Below, piece by piece: positions 1,881 through 18,428 of a stretch of DNA of 64,000 bases; position 1 is the first letter of the stretch; every line of letters starts with the position of its first letter. Under the pieces are notes generated by a model. The model was not told the DNA's origin. It did no database searches and saw only the letters and a list, made by a program, of their open reading frames with translations. Position numbers and translations under genes: made by a program. This stretch comes from Ruditapes philippinarum (Eukaryota). Location: positions 1 to 64,000 of the forward strand of contig NW_026862758.1 in NCBI RefSeq assembly GCF_026571515.1, read 5' to 3'.

Positions 1881-3525
1881 AAATATGATAACCATACGTG
1901 TTAACCGTAAATGAGAAGTTACATTTAAATGACTGAAACGTAGAATTCCGTAAAAATGATTAATCTAATTAGCAATAATAAATCATTTTGTCAAATGTCA
2001 TAAATAAGGTTTTGACAATTAAGACAAACATATATTCTATAATTTAGAAGCCTTATTATTAGTTAAATGGAAAAACGCATGGTTGAAATAAGTTAGTATT
2101 TATAGCTTACTTTACCTAAAATTGAATTGAACTAAATTACCAATTTTATTATCCAATAATATGATTAATAAACGATCAGTGACACTCTTAAACCGATTTT
2201 TATTAAAATGACATACCGGTAGTACTTTTAAAAAAAACTTGATTCTTAAAACAGTTATTTTATTTACCATCTTTTGAAAAATGCTTTCAAAGTAGCTAAT
2301 GCAAAATAATGTGATGAAAATATTGCCGGGTTTCCTACGACAAAACAACATCCGCTTTTTGAGAATAGAAATTTTGACACGTTTTATTACGTTTTGGGTG
2401 TTCTTTCTAAAAAAGGGTCGGCTTTTGGAGAAACGAAAAAACGATACGTTTAAATACGTTACTGTCGCGGAAAGGAAATAAAGTTGGTTGAAATCACGAT
2501 AATGGACAATCAAAGATTTTTGACTAAATTGAAAATTCCCTGCAAGTAAGGCATGCTGCTGCACAAAATAATTGTCAGAACTACTGATTTGAACTGGAGT
2601 CAATAGGCCATCATTGTTGCCTCTCACTCCTAACATTGATTTTGAATGAATTTTTGTGCCCCCACTTTAGGAGGGGGGTGGGGGTGGCATTTAGATTTAC
2701 CTTTGTCCATCCGTCCGTCCGTTCTCTTGTGTCGCACGTAACTCAAAAAGAATTTGACCTAGAGTCATGAAACGTTACAGGAATGTTGATCAGCATGTGT
2801 AGTTGTGCACCTGGGTATTTTCTTGTGGATTTATATAGTAGTCTTAGAGTTATTGCCCTTCACTAAGTAAATTTTGCAATTTTCAACTTGTCGCATGTAA
2901 CTCAAAAAGGATTTGACATAGAGTCATGAAACTTTACAGGAATGTTGATCAGCATGTGTAGTTGTGCACCTGGGTATTTTCGTCTGGGTTTATTTAGTAT
3001 TTTTAGAGTTATTGCCCTTGACTTGGTAAAACTTGCAATTTTCAACTTGTGTCGCATGTAACTCGAAAAGGATTTGACCTAGTCATAAAACTTTATAGCA
3101 TGTGTAGTTGTGCACCTGGGTATTTTCACGTGGATTTATACAGTATTGTTAAGAGTTATTGCCCTTGACTTAGTAAAATTTTGCAATTTTCAACTTGTGT
3201 TGCATGTAACTCAAAAAGGATTTGACATAGAGTCATGAAACTACAGTAATTTTGATCAGCATGTGTAGGTGTGCAACGTGAATTAATTTAGTATTTGTAG
3301 AGTTATTGCCCTTGACTTAGTAAAAATTAGCAATTTTCAACTTGTGTCACATGTAGCTCAAAAAGTATTTGACCTATGTTCATGAAACTACAGAAATGTT
3401 CATCAGCATATGTAGTTCTGCACCTGGGTATTTTCATAAGCATTTATTAGCTCACCTGTCACAAAAGAAAATGGTGAGCTTTTGCGATCACTTTGGCCGG
3501 CGTCCGTCCATAAACTTTTACTTAA

Positions 3526-3870
3526 AAGCTGCATGCCTCCAGACGAGTCAAAATATTTCAAGAAAAATCAAACTTGGAAATATGTACTACGATTTTAGGA
3601 AAAGTAAAATGATTCAAGTTTCAAGTAATGTTTTACATGTAATGTGCGGTTAATGACTGATTTTTTTTCGTATTTACAACTAAATTTCTACTGTGTTACT
3701 AAAGCAGTAAGGACTATTTATGCATATTTTGACAACTTTGGTAATTTACATGGCTTGTAAGTGCCATTGATAATGTGTAAATGACTTCCTTTTGGTTATA
3801 TCACAATATTATACATTCAAATTTTAAAATTTTTCATGAAATGTAGCATGAATCTGGAGGCTTGCTGCTG
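3526..3870. mobile_element. Small TIR element inserted in the Helentron-like body (possibly Kolobok-like)
   Basis: GCTGCATGCCTCCAGA..TCTGGAGGCTTGCTGC inverted ends next to TTAA/TAA. Confidence 0.5.
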
Positions 3871-4460
3871 TAAGCAACATCTCATAAACCGCTAAGCCAA
3901 TTTCATCCAAACTTCACAGGAATGTTCCTTTGATAGTCAATTTTGAAAATTGTTCAAAGAATTCAATTCCAAGCCAGGGATTTTTTTTGCCTTATCTTAT
4001 AGCCGATATTCGGTCATATTCCCAATTGAAAATAGTATATTCACTATATTGTTTTCCCAATCCACAGGAAAAATTGCCAATTGAAGGTTACAAAATAAAT
4101 AACAAATTTTAAAATAAGGGCTTCTTCACTGTTATGGTGCTTAAATGTTTGCAGACAGTTGTTCTTTGCATTCTTTCAATCACTGCAAAATTTAAGTCAT
4201 GTACTTCTCCAACTTTTTAACAAAACATCGATGAAATTCCCAATTCCATGTGTATGGGTCATGTTCCCAAAATCCTGAGAAAAAAAACAACCTGCAAGCA
4301 GAACTATGGTTGCCATGGCAACCAAAAGATAAAAAAACCCTTAAAATATCTTCTTTTAGAGAACCGAAAGAGCTAGAGCTTAAATATATTTTAGTCGGTG
4401 TCTACCCAGTTTGTTCAAATAAATGTCTTGAGGTCAAAATTTCTTGCAAAAAAAATAATC

Positions 4461-4706
4461 AAATATACTGAAACAAAAAAGAAACTTTCTCCAAGTTTGA
4501 ATGTAGATATTTCAATCCTTTTGAAACTCGATTTTAACGTTGAATAAACATATCGGGCTTTTATACGGGGATTAGCTGACCGATTTTGCAAACAAAACGA
4601 GTTTTACAAGCTACTACATGTATATAAGTGTGTACATCTATAAGTGGTACCCTTGAACAACTGGCACATACTTTGCGAAAGTTTCTTTTTTGGTTCAGTA
4701 TATTTA
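4461..4706. mobile_element. Small MITE with ~29-bp TIRs
   Basis: AAATATACTGAAACAAAAAAGAAACTTTC / GAAAGTTTCTTTTTTGGTTCAGTATATTT. Confidence 0.6.
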
Positions 4707-4796
4707 GTTTCATATACACTTTAAACTGAACATAAAATAATTATGGATTCAATTGCATACCAGTTTTCTATTTCCTGCATACAATGCTAAAATAAT

Positions 4797-5033
4797 TGAG
4801 CCGCGCCATGACAAAACCAACATAATGCGTTTGCGACCAGCATGGACCCAGACCAGCCTGCGCATGCGCGCAGTCTGATCAGGATCCATGCTGTTCGCTT
4901 ACAAACCCTATAACAAATAGAGACTCTGACAGCGAACAGCATGGATCCTGATCAAACTGCGCGGATTTGCAGGCTGGTCTGGATCCATGCTGGTTGCAAA
5001 CCTATTATGTTAGTTTTGTCATGGCGCGGCTCA
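4797..5033. mobile_element. Palindromic MITE (TGAGCCG..CGGCTCA family), copy 1
   Basis: ~237 bp with ~100-bp inverted arms; six copies in the window. Confidence 0.9.
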
Positions 5034-5502
5034 ATTATGTGTAGTTTTGTCATGAACACTTAAGCTTAAAGGTCACTGCAAAAATCTTGTTTTGCACAGC
5101 ACACACATGAAACTTAATTATTTGAAAATGAAATAGACCTTCTCAAGTGAAAGTCTCAGAAAAGTTTTAAAAGAATTCTAAGAAGTAAGGCAGTAAAAAG
5201 TATATACAGTTTATTTGTTTATTTCATATTTTATAATAGCATAAGATTATAAATACAAAATCGTATCATATATTAGTTGCTGATTCATATGAAAGAATAA
5301 CTGAAAGACCCTCAAATATATAGTGAGAAGTTAAAAATTGGGTTACATTCACTTTGACTGTGTTAATTGAAACCAGCAAGTTACAGAAAGAATGATGGCA
5401 GGCATATATTTTAACATCTGAGTCAGTTTGATACAAACAAGCAGTATAATTATGATCAGTGAAAACTTTATTTGCAACACTGTCACTGTTTTTGACCCCT
5501 TA

Positions 5503-7622
5503 TTATTGGCTAGCCAATAAGCCAGAAAGGAGCTTACATATATGTATGATTGCTACATTGTTTCTTGCCCTTAGTTGAAGAGAAAGCAGGTAATAATTCA
5601 ATGCTTGTTGAGGTCTGTTTTCTTGTTCCATACATTGCCCTAAGATGTTGAGAGCTGTTTCTCTATGTGTAAGGTTTTTATCAGTTACTATGGTTCTAAT
5701 AAGTTTACTAAGCGCTTGTTGTTGATCTTGATGTCTTTGTAGATGACTGTAGATCTTATATTGTAGGAAGTACAGGAAAGGTAGAGAATCAACTACAGCC
5801 CAGTTCATCCAATAGTCTAATAACTCATCTCTGTGTATCATGTCATGTTGTGCAGATCTAAACATTTCATATTGTAGTTCATGAGGAACACAGTTGATCT
5901 CTTCCTGTATAAATTTGACACAAAATGCTGTAATATGTTTGATACAGTCCTCACTTTGCTCAGTACATATTCTTACTAATTCCGCTTTTACTGCTTGTGG
6001 CTGCTTACGCGAGCAGCCACAGATGGGTACAACAGGATAAGAGTAATATTGTTGTTCAGTCTGTCTCAGAATAAGTTCAGCTTTCTCCATATCTCCTGCA
6101 CTGTAGAACACTGAAGCCAATTTCAGTCTGCCAGATGAGTTATCTGAGTTTAAACCAGCTGAAAGCCAAGCCAATGCTGGAGGTGGCACTTGATTATTTT
6201 CACCAAGGCTGGATGATGCCAGGATAGATCCATATGTGGTAAAAGAACAAGGTGCTAGAAACTTGAATGCATCATGTTCTAATCTGTTACCATTATCACT
6301 GAAAGCAATAAGTTTACCTATGCAATGCTTGATTGTTACAATGCTTTTTTTTGTAAATATTTTAAAATAGCCATATGATTTATGCTTGTAACGTATGCTG
6401 TGTTTAAATAATCACAGAACATATAAAGTTCTTTTATTTCATAATGATATGCTCTTTGTGGTACCATGTTCAGTTTAACTTGCAGTCTATGGCCAAGATC
6501 ATCAATATCAATTCTAAGTAACATTTGTCTGTCATTTTGCAAATAATCACTCATATTTTTTAAAAGTTCATGTTTTTTTCCAGCTGTAAATTGCCCTGCC
6601 ATTAAATTGTTTTCTCGGATAATGAAATGTGAACAACAGTTATTCTGTACACAGCTTTGTAATTCTAATAAGCAGTATGTTAAGCATATAATTAAATTGT
6701 TCTCTTTCCATATACTTGACTCTGTGTTTTCTATACAGTGAAATAGAACTGTTTTACACATGAAACTTGATATATTGATTTCCCCGTGAGGATTGAGGAA
6801 GGATTTAAGAACCATTTTCAATAAAACATAGCACCTTATTTGCGTTATATTTAGATTGAACGTAAGGCATCTTTCTGCCAATGTTGTAGATATTCTCCAT
6901 TCCAGGTCAGGATATTTACTGACCTTACTTCCAGTTGGAACAACGAAACACCCAGTACTGGCTATATATCTTCTCATGTCTTGTGTTGGCCATCTGCCAA
7001 TACCTTGTCTATCTAACCAACCTGATGCTGATTGAGGCCAGGATTTACAAGAAAAAGCTGGCACAGTGTCTGTATCACACATTCCATGCCCTCCTTGTAC
7101 AGGATATGATGGTCCATGTTTGAAAATACACTGACCGGAAGGTCCATGTTTTAAAAAACCCTGACCGGAACCATTAAATATTGTGTTTTTTAACAATATT
7201 CTTCCTCTTCTATTATTGATATGGTGTTCTTTAGGAATGACAGTGGCAGGACGAGGTTCGTAACAATGGAGCAGTTGTAGGAAACAATAACCAGGGGTAG
7301 TATTCTCATCCTGTATCATGAGATAGTTTTTCTTGCCATGTTCCCACTCTGACCAGTCTTGTATTATATTGAAATCATGCACACAGACTAGTATATCAAT
7401 GTCTGAATTAAGTCCAATAGTAGTTGAACCTTCAGTCTGGCTCCCTAGATGATATTCAGTAAGTTTTAGATCAATTGACCTGTTTCTGATGTTACTCATA
7501 GTCTCTTTCAACATGTACCTTCTTCTCCTTCTCATCACCATTCTTTCATTGACACCAATGTCATCTAAAACCTCTGATAACATCAATGATAGGTTTTCTC
7601 TGTAGTCAGGTTCTTGAAACAT
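5503..7622 (-). CDS. cGAS-like receptor (cGLR; Mab-21 family nucleotidyltransferase) with C-terminal helical/TPR-like region; one frameshift at 6345-6352
   Basis: ORF 6336-7664 has the NTase motif GSQTEG-x7-SDID, a third acidic residue in DTDTVPAF, and Mab-21 segments WPQSASGW, LEWRISTTLAER and SFMCKTVLF. ORF 5503-6189 gives the helical C-terminus (RETALNILGQCMEQ). Adding one A to the A8 run (T8 at 6345-6352) joins both into ~706 aa with no stops (..LQKKSIVTIKHCIGKL..ENNQVPPPALAW). A splice acceptor (ttacag|A ATG) sits just before ATG 7622, so upstream exons are possible. Confidence 0.88.
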
Positions 7623-10600
7623 TCTGTAACAATTAGTAAAGGGGAAAATTGTTTTATTCAGCAACCAAGTTTATTTCGTCATGTTACTTAACTGTCCTTG
7701 ATGTCCTAGAACAGAACAGCACCGGATAGCCAGTACAGGATAGCAAATTTTGAAATTTTACATAATTTTAGGTAGATATCAATAAATAAATGAAATTGTA
7801 GATTTGTTTTCCTTTTATCTATTTGTTTTGTTATTTTTCTATTTCATTTCATGAACATTTTGATGTCTTAGTGTCTTAATAGATGAGTGGATGTGTGATT
7901 TATTAATTTCTTAATACTGAATATTAAAGTTAATCCTGGCAAAATATAACTGAATGTCTTTTTACCATGGTGGATTTTCTTTCAGTCTATTTTGTGTTAC
8001 AACTTTTCCAGTATCAATTTATTAAAAAAGTTTCTTACTTTCAATTTTGTTTAAAAAAAAAACTTTATGAAAAATAAATAAATAACTTACCAATATTTTA
8101 TCAATAGTAAATTGAACTAGTTCTTTAAAATAGTGAAACATTTTTGATTTCCAGAGTTACATTAATTTTATACTATTTTTTTTAATCAATACATAGTTAT
8201 AAATTTGATTAAATTTTGTGTAAAAATTACATTATATTAAATTGTATTAACTTGAAGCAGAAGCTAAGACAAGGATACTTGAATTTAATATAAACATTTG
8301 GCATTAAATTCTTACATAATTAAATTTTCAATGAAATACTTTGTTAAAATATTATTAATTAATAATGTAATAAATGTTGAAATATGTGTACAAAAATAAA
8401 TCACAAACTTACTTTGAAAAGATGATTTCGTACTATGTCACGAAAAAATCAAGAAATTATATTATTCTGTTTCGCAAGATCGAAAGAAATTTTGCTACTT
8501 TTACTTCCTCTGATGATGTGAGGAGGGAAATAACGCATTTTATCATCCTACTGTTTTATAAGAAAATTTTATTGTTTCCTCTGTTGAAAAAAAAACAACA
8601 ACAAAACATTAACAACATACATGAAACTATAAGGACTATAAGGACTTAAATATAAAGTACTATCTATTAAAGCAATAAAGAAATTATTAAGACAACATAT
8701 GAATTAAAATTATGTAAAGAATATTGCATGTACAAACATGCTTTCAGAGATTAGGTATATAAAAATGTTTTACAGACATGCCTAATTAAGATTTTAAGAT
8801 TATTGAAAACACAATAAATTTAGAGAGAAATGCGTTATTATTTAAATAACTGACAGAGTATTCATCAAGCTAACTTAGATATGAATATGGTACAATGTAT
8901 TATTGTTTATAAATTGAAAAATAGAAATACCAAAAAAAAAAAAATGAAGAAAGATAATGACTATTTTTTTTTTGTAATAAAACTCAGTATTTTCATGAGA
9001 AAACACATATACCACTCTTGTGGCTGAGGGGTTGCCTTTAAGGGTTGAGGCATCAAAATTGCAGCCACCGTTTATCCCTGTGTGATCATAAAGGGGGGCT
9101 AAATGGGTTTGAATTACTGCACTCTCTGCATCTATAATAGCTCCAGCTGGTAAGGTGGTTATGACCCCTGGTGTTGCTTCAAGTTTGAAACATTTAGGGT
9201 AATATCCAAATTCATCTTTCCTTTTTCAGCACAATATGACTTAGCTGGTTGGTGCCCTGTAAAACCAAACCAAACAAAAACTAAACAAAACAAAACTATA
9301 TAGGTATACAAAATAATATTATGGCAATAGATCTTCTAATAAAATATTGTCCTATATGTTATAAGTTCCCTACTAGTTAAACTGGAGGGGACTTTTAGGT
9401 GTACAAACATGTAGATACTTAAAGGGCTATGGGAAGGGTAAATTTCCTTTGATGCTTTTCATTCAGTAAGCTCTTTGGTGGCTAATTTTTCTCTTACTTG
9501 GCTAAAAGAACAATAGAGAGAACAAAAGAGTGGCAACTTATATACCAGACTTTGAGCACGTCCATTCAAACCATCTGTCCGTCCGTCCGCCCATACTTCC
9601 ATCCACAAAACTGGATCCCTTGATAACGCAAAAAGTACTGAAAATATTTTAGTGAAACTTGAAATATGGATAGATGGCAGTCTGAAGATAATGCATACAT
9701 TTTTCTTTTCTCCCTATGTTGAAACATTTGGTTGTTATGATAACAAATAGATTTAAAACATGGCAAATGTAATACAAAAACTAGATCCCGGGATAACGCA
9801 AAAAGTACTGAATTTTTTTTTTAGAAACTTAAAATATGGATAGATGGCAGTCTGGAGATTGTGCACATCTATGTTGAAAAATTTGGTTGCTTTGGCAACA
9901 AATGGACTTAAAATATGGCAAATATAACAATACATGTAGGTCTAATTGTGATAACTTAAAAATTACTGAAAATATTTTTAAAAACTTGCAATATGGATAG
10001 ATATGGAGAGGTTCACAAATCTAACACTAAAATTATTAGATTTACCTCCCCTTATCTTAGAAAAAAATGTTGTTTTTGTATAACTTCTTTATTTCTTAAT
10101 GCATCTATTTCAAATATGTGGCAATAGTTTCATATCACTTATCAGAATTATCATCCTTAATTGAACTCGGGAAATTTCATGAAAAAATGTGGTTTTCTAT
10201 AACTTCTTTATTTCTAAAGATGTCTACTTCAAACTTCAAGTACATTTATATGTTCCTTATTTTGACTCAAATCATGTGTGAGAAGATTCAATACCCTAGC
10301 TTGACTATTTCCAGCATTGTGCGCCCCCTTTTTTCTATAAATGATTATTTTTTCCTCATTTCTAACAGGATTTACTTCAAACTGCAAATTCCCAGATAAT
10401 TGTAATATGACAAGGTCTTTATACATGTATCTGCTGTCCACATTTCCAGAATAAACTTCCCTGTCAACTTTGATTTTCCCTTTTTAGCTCAGGGTGAGCT
10501 TTTAGAATCGTTGAATGTCAGTCATCCGTCCACATTTGTTCGTTAACACTCTAGCTAGCGGTCACATTTTTGCCTCAATCGCCATCAAACTTTGTCAGGA

Positions 10601-11870
10601 TGCTTGTCTTGGTAATAGCTCATGGGACATCTTGGATGAAAAACAGGAGCTAAAAATAGAGAACACTTGTTAACACTCTACTGGTCACATTTTTTACTCA
10701 ATTGTCATCAAACTTGGTCAGAATGCTTGGATGAGTTTGATGGGTCAGGTGAGCGATCTAGGGCCATAATGACCTTCTTGTTTAGTATTTGTAGAGTTAT
10801 TGCCCTTGACTTAATTTTTTTTGCAATTTTCAACTTGTGTCGCATGTAGCTCAAAAAGTATTTGACCTAGAGACATGAAACTTGTGCACCTGGGGTTTCG
10901 CTTGCGGATTTATTCTGTTTTGTCAGAGTTATTGCCCTTGACTTAGTAAAAACTATCCATTATGTTGCGATATTTGTTCCTTCAGTGCTTGAGCTAGAAT
11001 CAACCAACTTTACAGGAATAATGATAAACATCACTGTGAAGCTATGCACGTTGGGTCTTGCATGTGGAATTTTTCAAGTTTTGTTTGAATTATTGACCTT
11101 GACTTAGTATAAATTTGCAATTTTCAACTTGTTCATGCATAGCTCAAATTTTTTTGACCTGTAAGCCTGAAAAATTCAAAAATTTTGGTCAGCATGTGTA
11201 CGTACATATTTTTGGGTTTGCTTGTGGATTTGTTCAGTATTTGTAAAGTTCTTGCCCTTTTCTTAGTACAAATTTTTTAGTTTTCAACTTGTGGCACATG
11301 TAGCTCAAAAAATTTGACCTAGAGTCATAAGATTGACAAAACAGTGGCCGGAGTGTGGGGGCACCCGTGCCCTATGGACACATTTCCAGTTATTTATTAA
11401 GATGTGTTTGGTATACACTTTTTTAAGGTCTAATGTAATATTCAGGAGGCCTACATGAGTCATAAAATTTATGCCTATATCATTTGGTAAGATTTGTGTG
11501 AAAACTTTGTTATAAAATTGCTGCACACAACCTTTACGGTCACAATGACCTAGCGACTAGTCATGACAGGTAGATATTGTTTTGTCACTAGGTCAAAAGT
11601 CAGCCACAATAACCTAGCCACTTGACTAATTGACTGCTGATACTGGGCATACATGTTTTACAAAGATTTATCTATGCTCTTTAATGTACTGAGTGAATGA
11701 AAGTTGTGTTGCTGGCGTTGTATAAAGCTGTTATTTATGAATGAATGGTCTTAAATTCATACTTGAGCATTACTACTTTAAGGACAACGTCTTAAAAAAA
11801 GATCAAACTCAGTTGACATTGACCTATAAATAGCCTTTACCTTGAAGATCAAATTATAGTAATTTCATAT

Positions 11871-12940
11871 TTTTAAGCCACTGCAGCATCTGCGATGCAG
11901 TGGCATGTAGCGATTCACGTGTGTGTGTGTGCGTGCGTGTTATATAGATTATATATGAACTTGAAAAATCTTCTTGTTAAAAACCACTGGTCCAATTTCA
12001 ACCAAACTTGGCAGGATTAATCCTAGGGTGAAGGGCTTCCAAAGTTGTTTCATAAAGCACTTCATTCATTGCAGAAATCTGGTTGCCATGGCAAACACAA
12101 GGAATTAGAAAAATAAATCTAAAAATCTTCTTGTAAAGACCCACAAGGCCTAGAGCTTAGATATTTTGCATAAGGCATTGTTTGGTAGACCTCTACCAAG
12201 ATTGTTCAAATTATAGCCCTGGGGTCAAAATTGGCCCCGCCCCGGGGGTCATTGATTTTCACTATATGTACATATAGTAAAAACTTAAAAAATCATCTTC
12301 TCGAAATTGACAAAGGCTAGAGATAAGATATTTTGCACGAAATATTGTGTAGTGAACCTCTAGCAAGATTGTTTAAATTATAGCCCTGGGGTTAAAATTG
12401 GCCCTGCCTCGGGGGTCATTGATTTTTCACTATGTTCATATATTAGAACATTAAAAAATCTTATTGTCTGAAGGTACAAGGCTTAGAGCTTTGATATTTG
12501 GTATATGATATTATTTATAGGCACTCTACCAATGTTGTTAAAATTTTGCCTCTAGCGTCAAAATTAGCCCAGCCCCAGGGGTCATAGGTTTTCTTTACAT
12601 GTATATAGTAAAAACTTTAAAAATCATCTTCTCTTATTTACAAAGGCTAGAGGTTAGATATTTTGCATGAAACATTGTGTTGTGAACCTCTAGCAAGATT
12701 GTTCAAATTATAGCCCGGGGGTCAAAATTGGCCTTGCCCCGGGGGTCATGATTTTTCAGTCACTATATCATAAAGTAAAACATTAAAGATCTTCTTGTCT
12801 AAAGGTACTTATCTGATAATAACAATTTGATAGGTCAGTAATCTATGCATTATGGCAATCTTCAATTGTATAGAAACTATTACTATATAGTGTTGTATTA
12901 ATGCGGTGGCATAGCATCTTTCACAAATGCAATCTTGTTT
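11871..12940 (+). mobile_element. Helentron-derived element with ~180-bp tandem units
   Basis: 5' TTTAAGCCACTGC..GCAGTGGC hairpin plus (GT)n/(GCGT)n, repeated units (CAAATTATAGCCCTGGGGTCAAAATTGGCC), and 3' GCGGTGGC..CTTGTT. Confidence 0.75.
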
Positions 12941-15570: not shown

Positions 15571-17372
15571 AAATACATATTGAACCAGAAATTATTGTTC
15601 ATGTGCATTGAGACACGCGGTGATAATAATCAAACGTACAGCTAAAAATCTATCCATGCACTTCATTGATTCTCAACTGTATCATATATCATATAGGTGG
15701 AAAATTTCTTATACCTATTCAAAGAGACCATGTATTTAAACATAAACTCATCAAGTCAAGCCTCTAAACATGAAATAAAATGAAAGATATTTAGAAACTA
15801 TGTCAATATTTTTTCTTTGCTTAACTGACATTTAAAATGCTGTAAAAAACAAATGAGAAGTTCAACAAAACACTGTCTGTTTCCTTTAAAATTGTTAACA
15901 TTTGTGTGTATCTTTGCATGGTATCGTTGTTAAAACAAGCAATGTCTAAACCAAACAAACATCGGAGAATAAATTATTGGCAACTTGTAACTAGAACAGT
16001 TGCTTTTGTAAGTTATGTTGTTTTTGTCACTCTACTCTAGATAGGTCGAATATTTCACTATCGCTCACTTTCTTGAATATAAAGTGAGCTGTGAAGGGAG
16101 CGTATTGTCAGTAGAAAAAGAAAAGCAATAATATACAGTGCGCATTTGCATGAAACATGTGCAAAAAAAACCCACAAAAAATGATGATATTATGTTTTAT
16201 TGTGTTCGACGAAGTATCAGTTGTATGGAGTCCATAGAGTAAAAAATATGTGTAATAACTAAAGAGATTTATTTTCAATTTGTGAAGCATAATGTTTTAT
16301 TTGCAGTCTATTATAACATGGTAATAATACATGTAGTAAGACACACATTTTTTTTAAAAGAAAGTCCGAAATTGTGATAAAAATTTTAAATCATTTATAA
16401 ACCACACATTTATAAGATTAAAATTGTACTTTCCTTTTCCTGTATCTGCAATATTGAACTCTAAATTCAGCAGAGGTACAAGGGCCATAAAAACTTTAAC
16501 AATATGCTGAATTTAATTATTTGAAATTCACTATTTAACAAATATTTTCCTTTATATGCCCGGTGACATTTTTCGCCAAAAAGAAAAAATTACGATAAAA
16601 CTGTTTCTGAAAAAGTAGCAAGTTGAGAAGGTATTTTGGAAAACATAATGTTATTATACCGTTTAAATCGGTTAAAATAGTTTATGTGATATTTAAATCT
16701 ATTAAAATTTGCGTAATTTAACTTAATATAGACGTTGAACAATATAAGGGTATACTGTCAGAATTTTAAAAGACTGTGCCTTTTTCTGAAAGTTTCTTAT
16801 TCTTTTTGGGAAAGCCCGTTTCAGTAAAATGGCCAAAGTTATTTTAACACGAAATACTTTATTTTTTCTCACTTTTAGACAAAAAAAACCCTCAGGGGCC
16901 CAAAAAGGATTTTAAAAATAAATTGTAATAAATGGGCCCAAAGATAACAGATAAAGCAATTTATTTCGTCACATAAATATCGCAAACACATACAAAGTTA
17001 TTCCTTTAGGATTATACATAGTTTTTTTATGACATATGCAAAGTGAAAACTGTTAGTATATAGTGTAATCCAATGCTTACGAATATCCTGTATGCTGTAA
17101 TCAAGGATGCAACAAACAGTTAAGTGAAGTTTTATATAGCATAATAGGTATATATTATTCTTCTTAAACAATTTCAAAACAGGCAATATTATGTTAAATA
17201 CAACAAATATTTATTCACATAATAATTTAAAGTTAGAATTAATGCATTCATTTTTGAATTTAAAAAAAAACTGGCTTAGACTTTAACGAAAATCAATTTG
17301 TAATAATGCTTTTTGAAAATTACAATATTGATAAATCTTCATTTGAGCATCATATTTATGTTATAAAACGAT

Positions 17373-18428
17373 AAAAAATTTCTTAAACTTAAATACACGT
17401 CTGTTTTGTTATGTCCCGTAAGGTCAATCTGCAGACAAGTATCGTCATTTTCTTTCTGTCCTTTTCAATGCTATCTTCTGTGTTTACTGCAATTTGTTGT
17501 TTTCTGTCTTCCCATGTAATGTTTTGTACTTTCCGTTCAGCATATGTTGCCTGTGCTATTTTTTGCTATTGGACTATTGTTGTATGTTCCCTTATGTTTA
17601 TGTTGTCGTATGATACGTATCTATCGTCTTGTTGACGGTTCAATTCAGCGTATTTTACGTTACGTAATTGTTGTTGTAAGTTACGTATTTGTTACGTAAA
17701 TGTTGTATGTATTTCTCGTTTCCTGTTTCGTTGTCCGTATCTTCCGTTTTGTGTTCCTTTCAGCGTCTTTGTGCTTGCCAGTCAGATACAGTTGTGCCTT
17801 TTTGTCTGTCTTTTGCCGTTTGAAGGTCTACCGTTACTATTGTATGGTCTTCGGTATGTTCTTATAACTCGTTTTTCTGTTATTATTCCTTGTCCAATAA
17901 CGTTATCTACCGTCAAGTGTATCGATCCTCGTGTCTGTCCTCCTGTTAGCAGTGCTCGTCTCCGTCCTTTGTTATCGGTAGACGCCTCCGTTTTTCTGTT
18001 ATCAGTCCTAGCTTCCGTTCATTTGTTCTCAGGTCGTGTTTCCGTTGGTCTTGTAATCAATTCTCGTCTCCGTCCTTCTGTTATCAGTCCTCGTCTCCAT
18101 CCTCCTGCTATCAATCTTCGTATCCGTTCTTCTGTTATCAGTTCTCGTCTCCGCCCGCCTGTTATCAGTCTTCGTCTCCGTCCTACTGAAATCAGTTTGT
18201 GTTTCCGTTCTTCTGTTATCAGTCCTCGTCTACGTTCTTCTGTTATTGGTCCTCGTCTCCGTTCTTCTGCTATAAGTCCTCGTCGATAATCCGTCTTCGT
18301 TCCATCTTCTGGTTTTGTTTGTCTTGTAGTCATTTTAGTCATTCGTTCAGTGGAGTAGCGGGGGATCGAACTCACGACCCCTTGATTGGTAGGCAGATAA
18401 TGTTACCACTGCACCATAGCGCCCGCTC
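17373..18428 (-). ncRNA. Candidate Pol III transcription unit / long SINE-like element with tRNA-derived head and 27-bp tandem array
   Basis: A box TGGTGCAGTGG, B box GTTCGATCC and TATATA ~30 bp upstream. The purine-rich body has no T4 run until 17373-17378. Confidence 0.5.
17925..18300. repeat. 27-bp minisatellite (CTGTTATCAGTCCTCGTCTCCGTTCTT-like)
   Basis: About a dozen degenerate copies; these account for the repetitive ORFs on both strands. Confidence 0.85.

Follow-up and report, generated by a model that had tools for sequence, protein, structure and literature searches.

A cGAS-like receptor gene between the ends of two Helentron-type elements in the clam Ruditapes philippinarum

A 64,000-nucleotide stretch of the Ruditapes philippinarum genome (positions 1 to 64,000 of contig NW_026862758.1, assembly GCF_026571515.1; hereafter the window) carries a whole gene for a predicted cGAS-like receptor (cGLR) with a C-terminal tetratricopeptide repeat (TPR) region, enclosed by the ends of two Helentron-associated interspersed elements (HINEs), and the enclosed block interrupts the satellite of a third such element. 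The segment at 3449-10782 is probably a composite rolling-circle unit built from two HINEs, begun at the 5′ end of one (HINE-A) and ended at the 3′ end of the other (HINE-B). A preliminary description of the window had proposed that a composite element carried a whole cGLR gene into the satellite, and the proposal is supported by ends of the family type, an insertion exact to the satellite register, a second composite on another contig (C10961) and an empty site of HINE-B. Bivalves possess hundreds of cGLR genes and, to our knowledge, how the family spreads in these animals is not known. On our reading, the window provides a case, resolved to the base, in which two HINE ends moved a complete immune-sensor gene together with its upstream DNA, and C10961 provides one in which they moved a fragment of the same gene.

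The insert and its termini

Searches covered the 1.41-Gb assembly, in which the contig holding the window is C11245. Tandem Repeats Finder reports a repeat with periods of 147-159 bp at 2726-3435, which belongs to the satellite of the host HINE. The last left-side unit of this ~155-bp satellite ends ...GCATTTATT at 3448, and the satellite starts again with TAGTATTTGTAGAG at 10783. An uninterrupted unit reads ...GGTTTATT TAGTATTT..., so that the two halves rejoin like an intact unit with zero bases gained or lost, revealing neither a target site duplication (TSD) nor a deletion at the insertion. The interruption in unit register and the missing TSD had both been described before, and both hold. 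The 7,334-bp composite insert is flanked, as previously proposed, by the host element's own ends at 2650 and 11391: homology to other host-type copies runs from 2650 to ~11391, with inverted subterminal inverted repeats (subTIRs) GTGCCCCCAC at 2656-2665 and GTGGGGGCAC at 11355-11364. The neighbourhood of the host element is packed with HINE-type elements, including further arrays of a 154-bp B-type repeat at 1379-1669 on the left and of a ~166-bp A-type repeat at 11981-12800 on the right. Coordinates of all features are collected in Table 1.

HINEs have been described as the Cg_HINE elements of bivalves, which are non-autonomous Helentrons (Vojvoda Zeljko et al. 2020, PMC7492417), and as DINE-1 and the mite HINEs (Thomas et al. 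2014, PMC4067079). They are recognised by a 5′ subTIR close to an inverted repeat (IR) complementary to it, by a microsatellite of the GTCY type and satellite-like repeats in the centre, by a palindrome behind the 3′ subTIR, and by insertion without TSD at T-rich or TT sites (PMC7492417, PMC4067079). The elements in the window show the same set, with a palindrome that has decayed in HINE-B. In ~300 kb of retrieved genome sequence, all 12 distinct A-type 5′ ends were preceded by T (six by TTTT, six by TATT), and ten 3′ ends read CAGGTGAGCGA..GGGCCATCATGGCCCTCTTGTT, that is, CAGGTGAGC, a palindrome and then CTCTTGTT. Judged by sequence against these copies, the termini at 3449 and 10782 are canonical for the family.

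At the left terminus, AGCTCACC...GGTGAGCT (3449-3480) forms a hairpin of -6.8 kcal/mol (z -2.4), a structure also found in 11 related A-type 5′ ends, and the GTCY-type feature follows as CGTCCGTCC. Within the 64-kb window, the exact 9-mer GCTCACCTG and its complement CAGGTGAGC have no occurrences other than those at 3450-3458 and 10746-10754, bearing out the earlier view that this pair bounds the insert.

The right terminus belongs to a HINE of a different lineage. Beside the host satellite, the 3′ end of the insert carries B-lineage variants common with C10961 and not the A-type ones. The 5′ end of HINE-B at 10486 reads AGCTCAGGGTGAGC. Measured against the intact B-type 5′ end of C3656, AGCTCACCTGAGCATGCTCAGGGTGAGC, the window copy has lost 14 nt, including the subTIR core, confirming an internal second 5′ end without subTIR core that had been placed at ~10483. 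Because the HINE-B of C3656 occupies another site, this locus was rejected as a donor that shares the insertion. The right terminus had been set at 10781, which is off by one, as the terminal CTTGTT at 10777-10782 places it at 10782. Upstream of this hexamer lies the palindrome, which is perfect in the family consensus GGGCCATCATGGCCC and altered by three changes in the window version, GGGCCATAATGACCT. The junctions of the insert, TTTATT/.../TAG (slashes mark the ends of the inserted unit), are T-rich and without TSD, as are those of the second composite on C10961, TTTTTT/.../CATTTG.

Table 1. Features of the composite insert and its host element in the window
Feature	Positions	Strand	Description
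Host HINE, left part	2650..3448	+	5′ end, subTIR GTGCCCCCAC and complementary inverted repeat, short GTCC microsatellite, 4.6 satellite units, cut after ...TTTATT
Composite insert	3449..10782	+	HINE-A 5′ terminus to HINE-B 3′ terminus; in register in host satellite, without TSD
HINE-A 5′ end	3449..3527	+	subTIR AGCTCACCTG, complementary IR GGTGAGC 16 nt downstream, short CGTC-type microsatellite
High-copy repeat nested in HINE-A	3528..3880	.	>6,000 candidates, ~90% identity from ~3520 on; not in other HINE-A copies
HINE-A middle segment	3881..3974	+	87-91% identity to HINE-A copies at six other loci
A-type satellite, single ~166-bp unit	4295..4441	+	Arrays in relatives; element stops here
Miniature inverted-repeat transposable element (MITE), nested	4461..4705	.	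39-nt terminal inverted repeats; copies at 90-95% identity
Palindromic MITE, nested	4792..5038	.	121-nt arms; copies at 92-94% identity
3′ flank of gene	5091..5502	-	Common to paralogues
cGLR(Mab21)-TPR coding region	5503..7622	-	Single exon, ~700 codons, ATG 7620-7622, TAA 5503-5505; 1-nt deletion in T8 run
Upstream DNA carried with gene	7623..10485	-	2.86 kb; homologous to paralogue upstream regions; ~160-170-bp tandem repeats at 9604-10002
HINE-B	10486..10782	+	Crippled 5′ end, two 123-bp repeats (10555-10729), 3′ subTIR CAGGTGAGC (10746-10754), decayed palindrome, CTTGTT (10777-10782)
Host HINE, right part	10783..11391	+	Satellite restarts at TAGTATTT, then 3′ subTIR GTGGGGGCAC (11355-11364), end ...CCAGTT

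The empty site, the second composite and the cargo gene

Comparison with paralogous loci reveals how HINE-B came to lie beside the gene. On the right side, homology to the paralogues on C10351, C13738, C5914 and C4844 stops at 10485. At this point C10351 and C4844 show the HINE-B site in its empty state, cccttttt/TATTCAATTA..., and HINE-B is thus an insertion into the upstream region of the gene. The TATTCAATTA continuation is missing after the HINE-B 3′ end in both composites; in the window the DNA originally beyond HINE-B is absent and the host satellite stands in its place. On C13738 and C5914, a HINE-A is inserted 4 nt beyond the HINE-B site. A single ancient HINE common to all paralogues at 10485 was ruled out by these two sites 4 nt apart together with the empty sites on C10351 and C4844. 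On the left side, gene-flank homology ends between 5091 and ~5400, and no paralogue homology was found that reaches 3449 or crosses 10782. The terminal hexamer CTTGTT also occurs at 5086-5091, at the very point from which the paralogues L016, L018 and L019 are homologous, and may be either a chance match or what is left of a 3′ end, without hairpin, that belonged to the left HINE-A.

The closest relative lies on C10961 and aligns with window positions 7479-10782. Its identity of 95.6-97.8% is even over the 5′ part of the coding sequence, the upstream DNA and HINE-B, and the two composites differ by ~3%. Its HINE-B possesses the same crippled 5′ end, and homology ends at the same CTTGTT (524096), after which the next bases differ. 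The left part of this composite consists of a perfect HINE-A 5′ end at 529844, A-type satellites and a defective HINE-A 3′ end, whose palindrome lacks 3 nt and whose terminal hexamer is gone, and which directly abuts the equivalent of 7479. The 22 nt to the left of the 5′ end, AACATCATATCAAGTCTTTTTT, are found again 96 nt downstream of the composite, where they are followed by CATTTGTTAAGAGTCGG; this is also the sequence directly after the 3′ end of the composite, with a 22/22 match in the intact ~96-bp tandem repeat unit. Since the flanks are contiguous in an intact unit, a 5.75-kb unit of HINE-A, gene fragment and HINE-B was inserted here in register and without TSD. Cargo and terminus are therefore common to unlinked loci with unrelated flanks, as far as the 3′ 3.3 kb are concerned. 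The anatomy on C10961 is what read-through of a damaged terminator predicts, and it shows that the 3′ end of HINE-B works as a stop signal for an upstream 5′ end. Relative to the window, C10961:526490-528293 (L027) also contains two further insertions, one of 256 bp at a point equivalent to 8510 and one of 635 bp at a point equivalent to 9037. All three kinds of empty site used here, namely the intact host satellite units, the intact 96-bp unit of C10961 and the HINE-B site on C10351 and C4844, are paralogous and not allelic.

According to the preliminary description, the insert holds the entire cGLR coding sequence and ~3 kb of upstream DNA. All of the coding DNA and 2.86 kb of upstream DNA are indeed present, but the reading frame is shifted in the assembly. 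Two frames meet at one missing base in a T8 run (6345-6352, codon ~420), which is the only frameshift in the coding sequence, and one base more is present at this run in 14 of the 14 paralogues examined. Furthermore, a 213-nt contig from the independent run X1, matching 6274-6485 with one mismatch (G>C at 6331), has T9 and keeps the frame, so the frameshift is an assembly homopolymer error or a polymorphism. The 700-aa proteins of the paralogues align unbroken from ATG to stop, which makes the coding part intron-less; this alignment and the 1-nt deletion together rule out a two-exon model (6336-7664 and 5503-6189 with a 146-bp intron).

Several comparisons point to the nature of the product. 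The protein matches Pfam Mab-21_C (5e-12), and its best solved relative by sequence in a PDB search is Sp-cGLR1 (8gjy, 2e-8). An AlphaFold2 model (pLDDT 79.8) returned Sp-cGLR1 (8gjy), cGAS, MB21D2 and Cv-cGLR1 as top Foldseek matches, with E values of ~1e-13 over ~385 aligned columns. Across 30 family members, G60 S61, D74 x D76 and D183 show little or no variation. The active-site motif (G-S, acidic-x-acidic and a third acidic residue) thus appears complete, with the catalytic positions assigned by motif and not by superposition. The C-terminal 280 residues give weak TPR matches. Overall, the product is predicted to be a cGAS-fold nucleotidyltransferase of the Mab21 superfamily with a C-terminal TPR region and predicted activity.

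This large venerid family of ~700-aa proteins has dozens of members in R. philippinarum and in Mercenaria. In the R. philippinarum genome at least 40 loci are found at 75-86% DNA identity, and within the 64-kb window the gene is a singleton. Coverage by run X15 ('RNA?') extends to non-coding parts, so this run does not support expression. The upstream DNA includes three tandem repeat units (Table 1), and a longer array of the same repeat on C4844 (L035; ~17280-17862 of the joined copy) indicates that part of the 'promoter region' is derived from a satellite or transposable element.

Proposed route and alternatives

From the anatomy, the register-precise insertion, the terminus common to a second locus and the HINE-B empty site, all of which are observed directly, we infer an order of events, a transposase and 3449 as the site of initiation. 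In a donor copy of the cGLR-TPR gene, HINE-B would have inserted 2.86 kb upstream of the ATG, at TTTTT/TATT, and would then have lost its own 5′ subTIR through the 14-nt deletion. A HINE-A beyond the 3′ end of the gene, co-oriented and without a working 3′ end, would have completed the arrangement. A Helentron transposase acting in trans may have initiated at the HINE-A 5′ end (3449); without a terminator, transposition would have continued across ~6 kb of host DNA, including the gene and the DNA upstream of it, until it met the orphan HINE-B 3′ end (10782) and stopped there. The 7.3-kb product would finally have integrated without TSD at TTTATT/TAG in the satellite of the host HINE. Candidate transposases exist: at least 94 Helitron-like Rep matches are found genome-wide, and ~20 of these lie in open frames without interruption that span 1,600-2,640 aa, several of them 2,000-2,640 aa (the longest of 2,643 aa); these long frames suggest intact, possibly active rolling-circle transposases.

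Several observations weigh against this route. Downstream of 4441, neither a 3′ subTIR nor a palindrome is recognisable for the left HINE-A, and the 650 bp between this element and the gene flank consist mostly of later MITEs. The 3′ hairpin of HINE-B (10760-10775) folds no better than shuffled sequence (-1.8 kcal/mol, z +0.56); the description of the 3′ end as a hairpin followed by CTTGTT is thus correct for the hexamer, while the hairpin is recognisable solely by its homology to the family palindrome. Whether shared homology at unlinked loci ends at both termini of the insert had been proposed as a check, and C10961 answers it in favour of the route for the 3′ terminus, with the same CTTGTT. 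No second full-length copy with the left end was found, and 3449 is placed as the start on anatomy alone. A donor was likewise not found, as the junction of upstream DNA with the crippled HINE-B occurs in the window and on C10961 and in no third copy. No autonomous element with the termini of the insert was identified, the termini of the long Rep frames being unread. Contigs assembled from reads were all ≤450 nt in four runs and the ends are high-copy, so that neither the junctions nor an empty allele has read support. A last point concerns the satellite site, which is shared with plain HINEs, and for this reason the register argument alone is compatible with a HINE that was already nested there.

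Such a pre-existing nested HINE is the basis of an alternative in two steps without transposition of the cargo, in which the interior of a plain nested element was later replaced through ectopic recombination or gene conversion with a HINE-flanked paralogue locus. On C4487 (L039 and L024), a plain HINE-A occupies the identical satellite position, with junctions ATTTATT/AGCTCACC and CTCTTGTT/TAGTATTT equal to those of the window; the 5′ junction on C4820 (L023) is the same as well, and B-type 3′ ends join the same satellite in the same register on C3437 (214738-214895) and C5069 (11683-11837). Moreover, a paralogue often lies between a HINE-A and another HINE. However, the exchange on the right would need either a breakpoint in the final ~35 nt or an exact copy of the B-lineage terminus, and the right module on C10961 ends at the same base in a different register-split repeat, which is expected of transposition and not of conversion. 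We therefore regard replacement within a nested HINE as unlikely. The same site sharing has another side: plain HINEs of both types at TTTATT/TAG at unlinked loci indicate a preferred target of these elements, which supports integration by the element's own machinery. The repeated use of this sequence could reflect either a target hot spot or the amplification of nested composites.

Ordinary segmental duplication, with breakpoints that coincide with HINE ends through the high density of these elements, would account for a gene copy at this position without any transposition. Family members are often clustered, with several proteins per contig, HINE arrays are ubiquitous at these loci, and the paralogues on C4844 and C9132 have ~120 nt in common beyond the HINE-A 5′ end. 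Yet in the window both breakpoints fall on HINE termini to the base, the flanks fit together in register twice independently (in the window and on C10961), and the T-rich target without TSD is typical of the family; we consider a duplication of this kind quite improbable. An artefact, by which the assembled contig would join the host HINE to the gene locus via repeated HINE sequence, has to be weighed in a region this repetitive, where the junctions are without read verification. It is nonetheless very improbable: positions 2400-11800 contain no Ns, the joins lie at element termini and not within shared repeats, and related HINE copies are only ~75-90% identical, too divergent to mislead a long-read assembler. 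In addition, unique parts of the insert (5013-5429, 6110-6485 and 7048-7213) are present in contigs of three other studies.

Known systems and the wider gene family

Gene capture by Helitrons through bypass of the 3′ end (read-through or transduction) is known in maize and bats and receives mention in PMC4067079. The composite transposition proposed here resembles it in its start at a 5′ end, its defective or missing terminator and its stop at the next usable 3′ end, and on C10961 the bypassed, damaged 3′ end is still in place. In contrast to those cases, the element is a Helentron, and what it carries is not the usual exon fragments but an intron-less gene, complete and with 2.9 kb of DNA upstream of it. 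Within Helentrons, gene fragments were found by Thomas et al. only in Culex and Phytophthora (PMC4067079). HINE-like DINE-1 elements also occur at the breakpoints of the Drosophila gene duplicates Kep1, hydra and CK2beta-tes (PMC4067079), which likewise link non-autonomous Helentrons with duplicated functional genes. Those Drosophila cases are breakpoint associations, whereas the present case has base resolution at both termini, at the insertion site and for a second independent insertion. Bivalve HINEs have been described as carriers of satellite DNA (PMC7492417); the elements described so far carry satellite repeats only, whereas here the ends of two elements enclose 6 kb of host DNA including a whole gene.

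Fusions of cGLR and TPR regions and the radiation of cGLRs in bivalves were described by Li et al. 2023 (bioRxiv, 10.1101/2023.02.22.529553). The clam family corresponds to theirs in its cGAS/cGLR fold, complete active-site motif, C-terminal TPR region and very high copy number in a bivalve, its activity being predicted only; their study leaves aside how the copies spread. Overall, the locus adds an unusually well-resolved example to a known process, the transduction of genes by rolling-circle transposons. Its novelty lies in the element class, in which transduction is barely documented, and in the cargo, a whole immune-sensor gene. The two cases would link the most abundant bivalve repeat class to the dispersal of innate-immune genes, and the locus offers a concrete target for studies of presence/absence variation and Helentron activity.

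Read-through of HINEs or Helentrons might be a recurrent and possibly ongoing route by which whole cGLR-TPR genes and their regulatory DNA are copied to new sites in venerids, a suggestion that we make tentatively and consider somewhat doubtful. If true, it would seed new cGLR clusters and create presence/absence variation of immune sensors. The preliminary description had suggested that cGLR expansion and presence/absence variation arise in this way, which is partly contradicted by the many family members clustered on the same contigs and by C4844 and C9132, where the shared DNA beyond the HINE-A 5′ end does not support HINE transduction as a general mode of duplication. Clustering and this shared DNA indicate that tandem or segmental duplication is clearly also at work.

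Two independent composites nevertheless hint at recurrence, and C12330 (L021, 209902-215496) is a candidate for a third transduction. There, a complete HINE-A (local positions 67-1505, with seven satellite units) ends where the 3′ flank of the intact annotated gene P0003 (700 aa) begins, and the 66 nt to the left of this HINE-A are unrelated to the flanks of other paralogues. On C4844, another HINE 3′ end adjoins the homology boundary. Of 15 other paralogue loci, five have HINE-A features ≤1.6 kb 3′ of the stop codon, in each case in the orientation of the HINE-A of the window and never in the opposite one.

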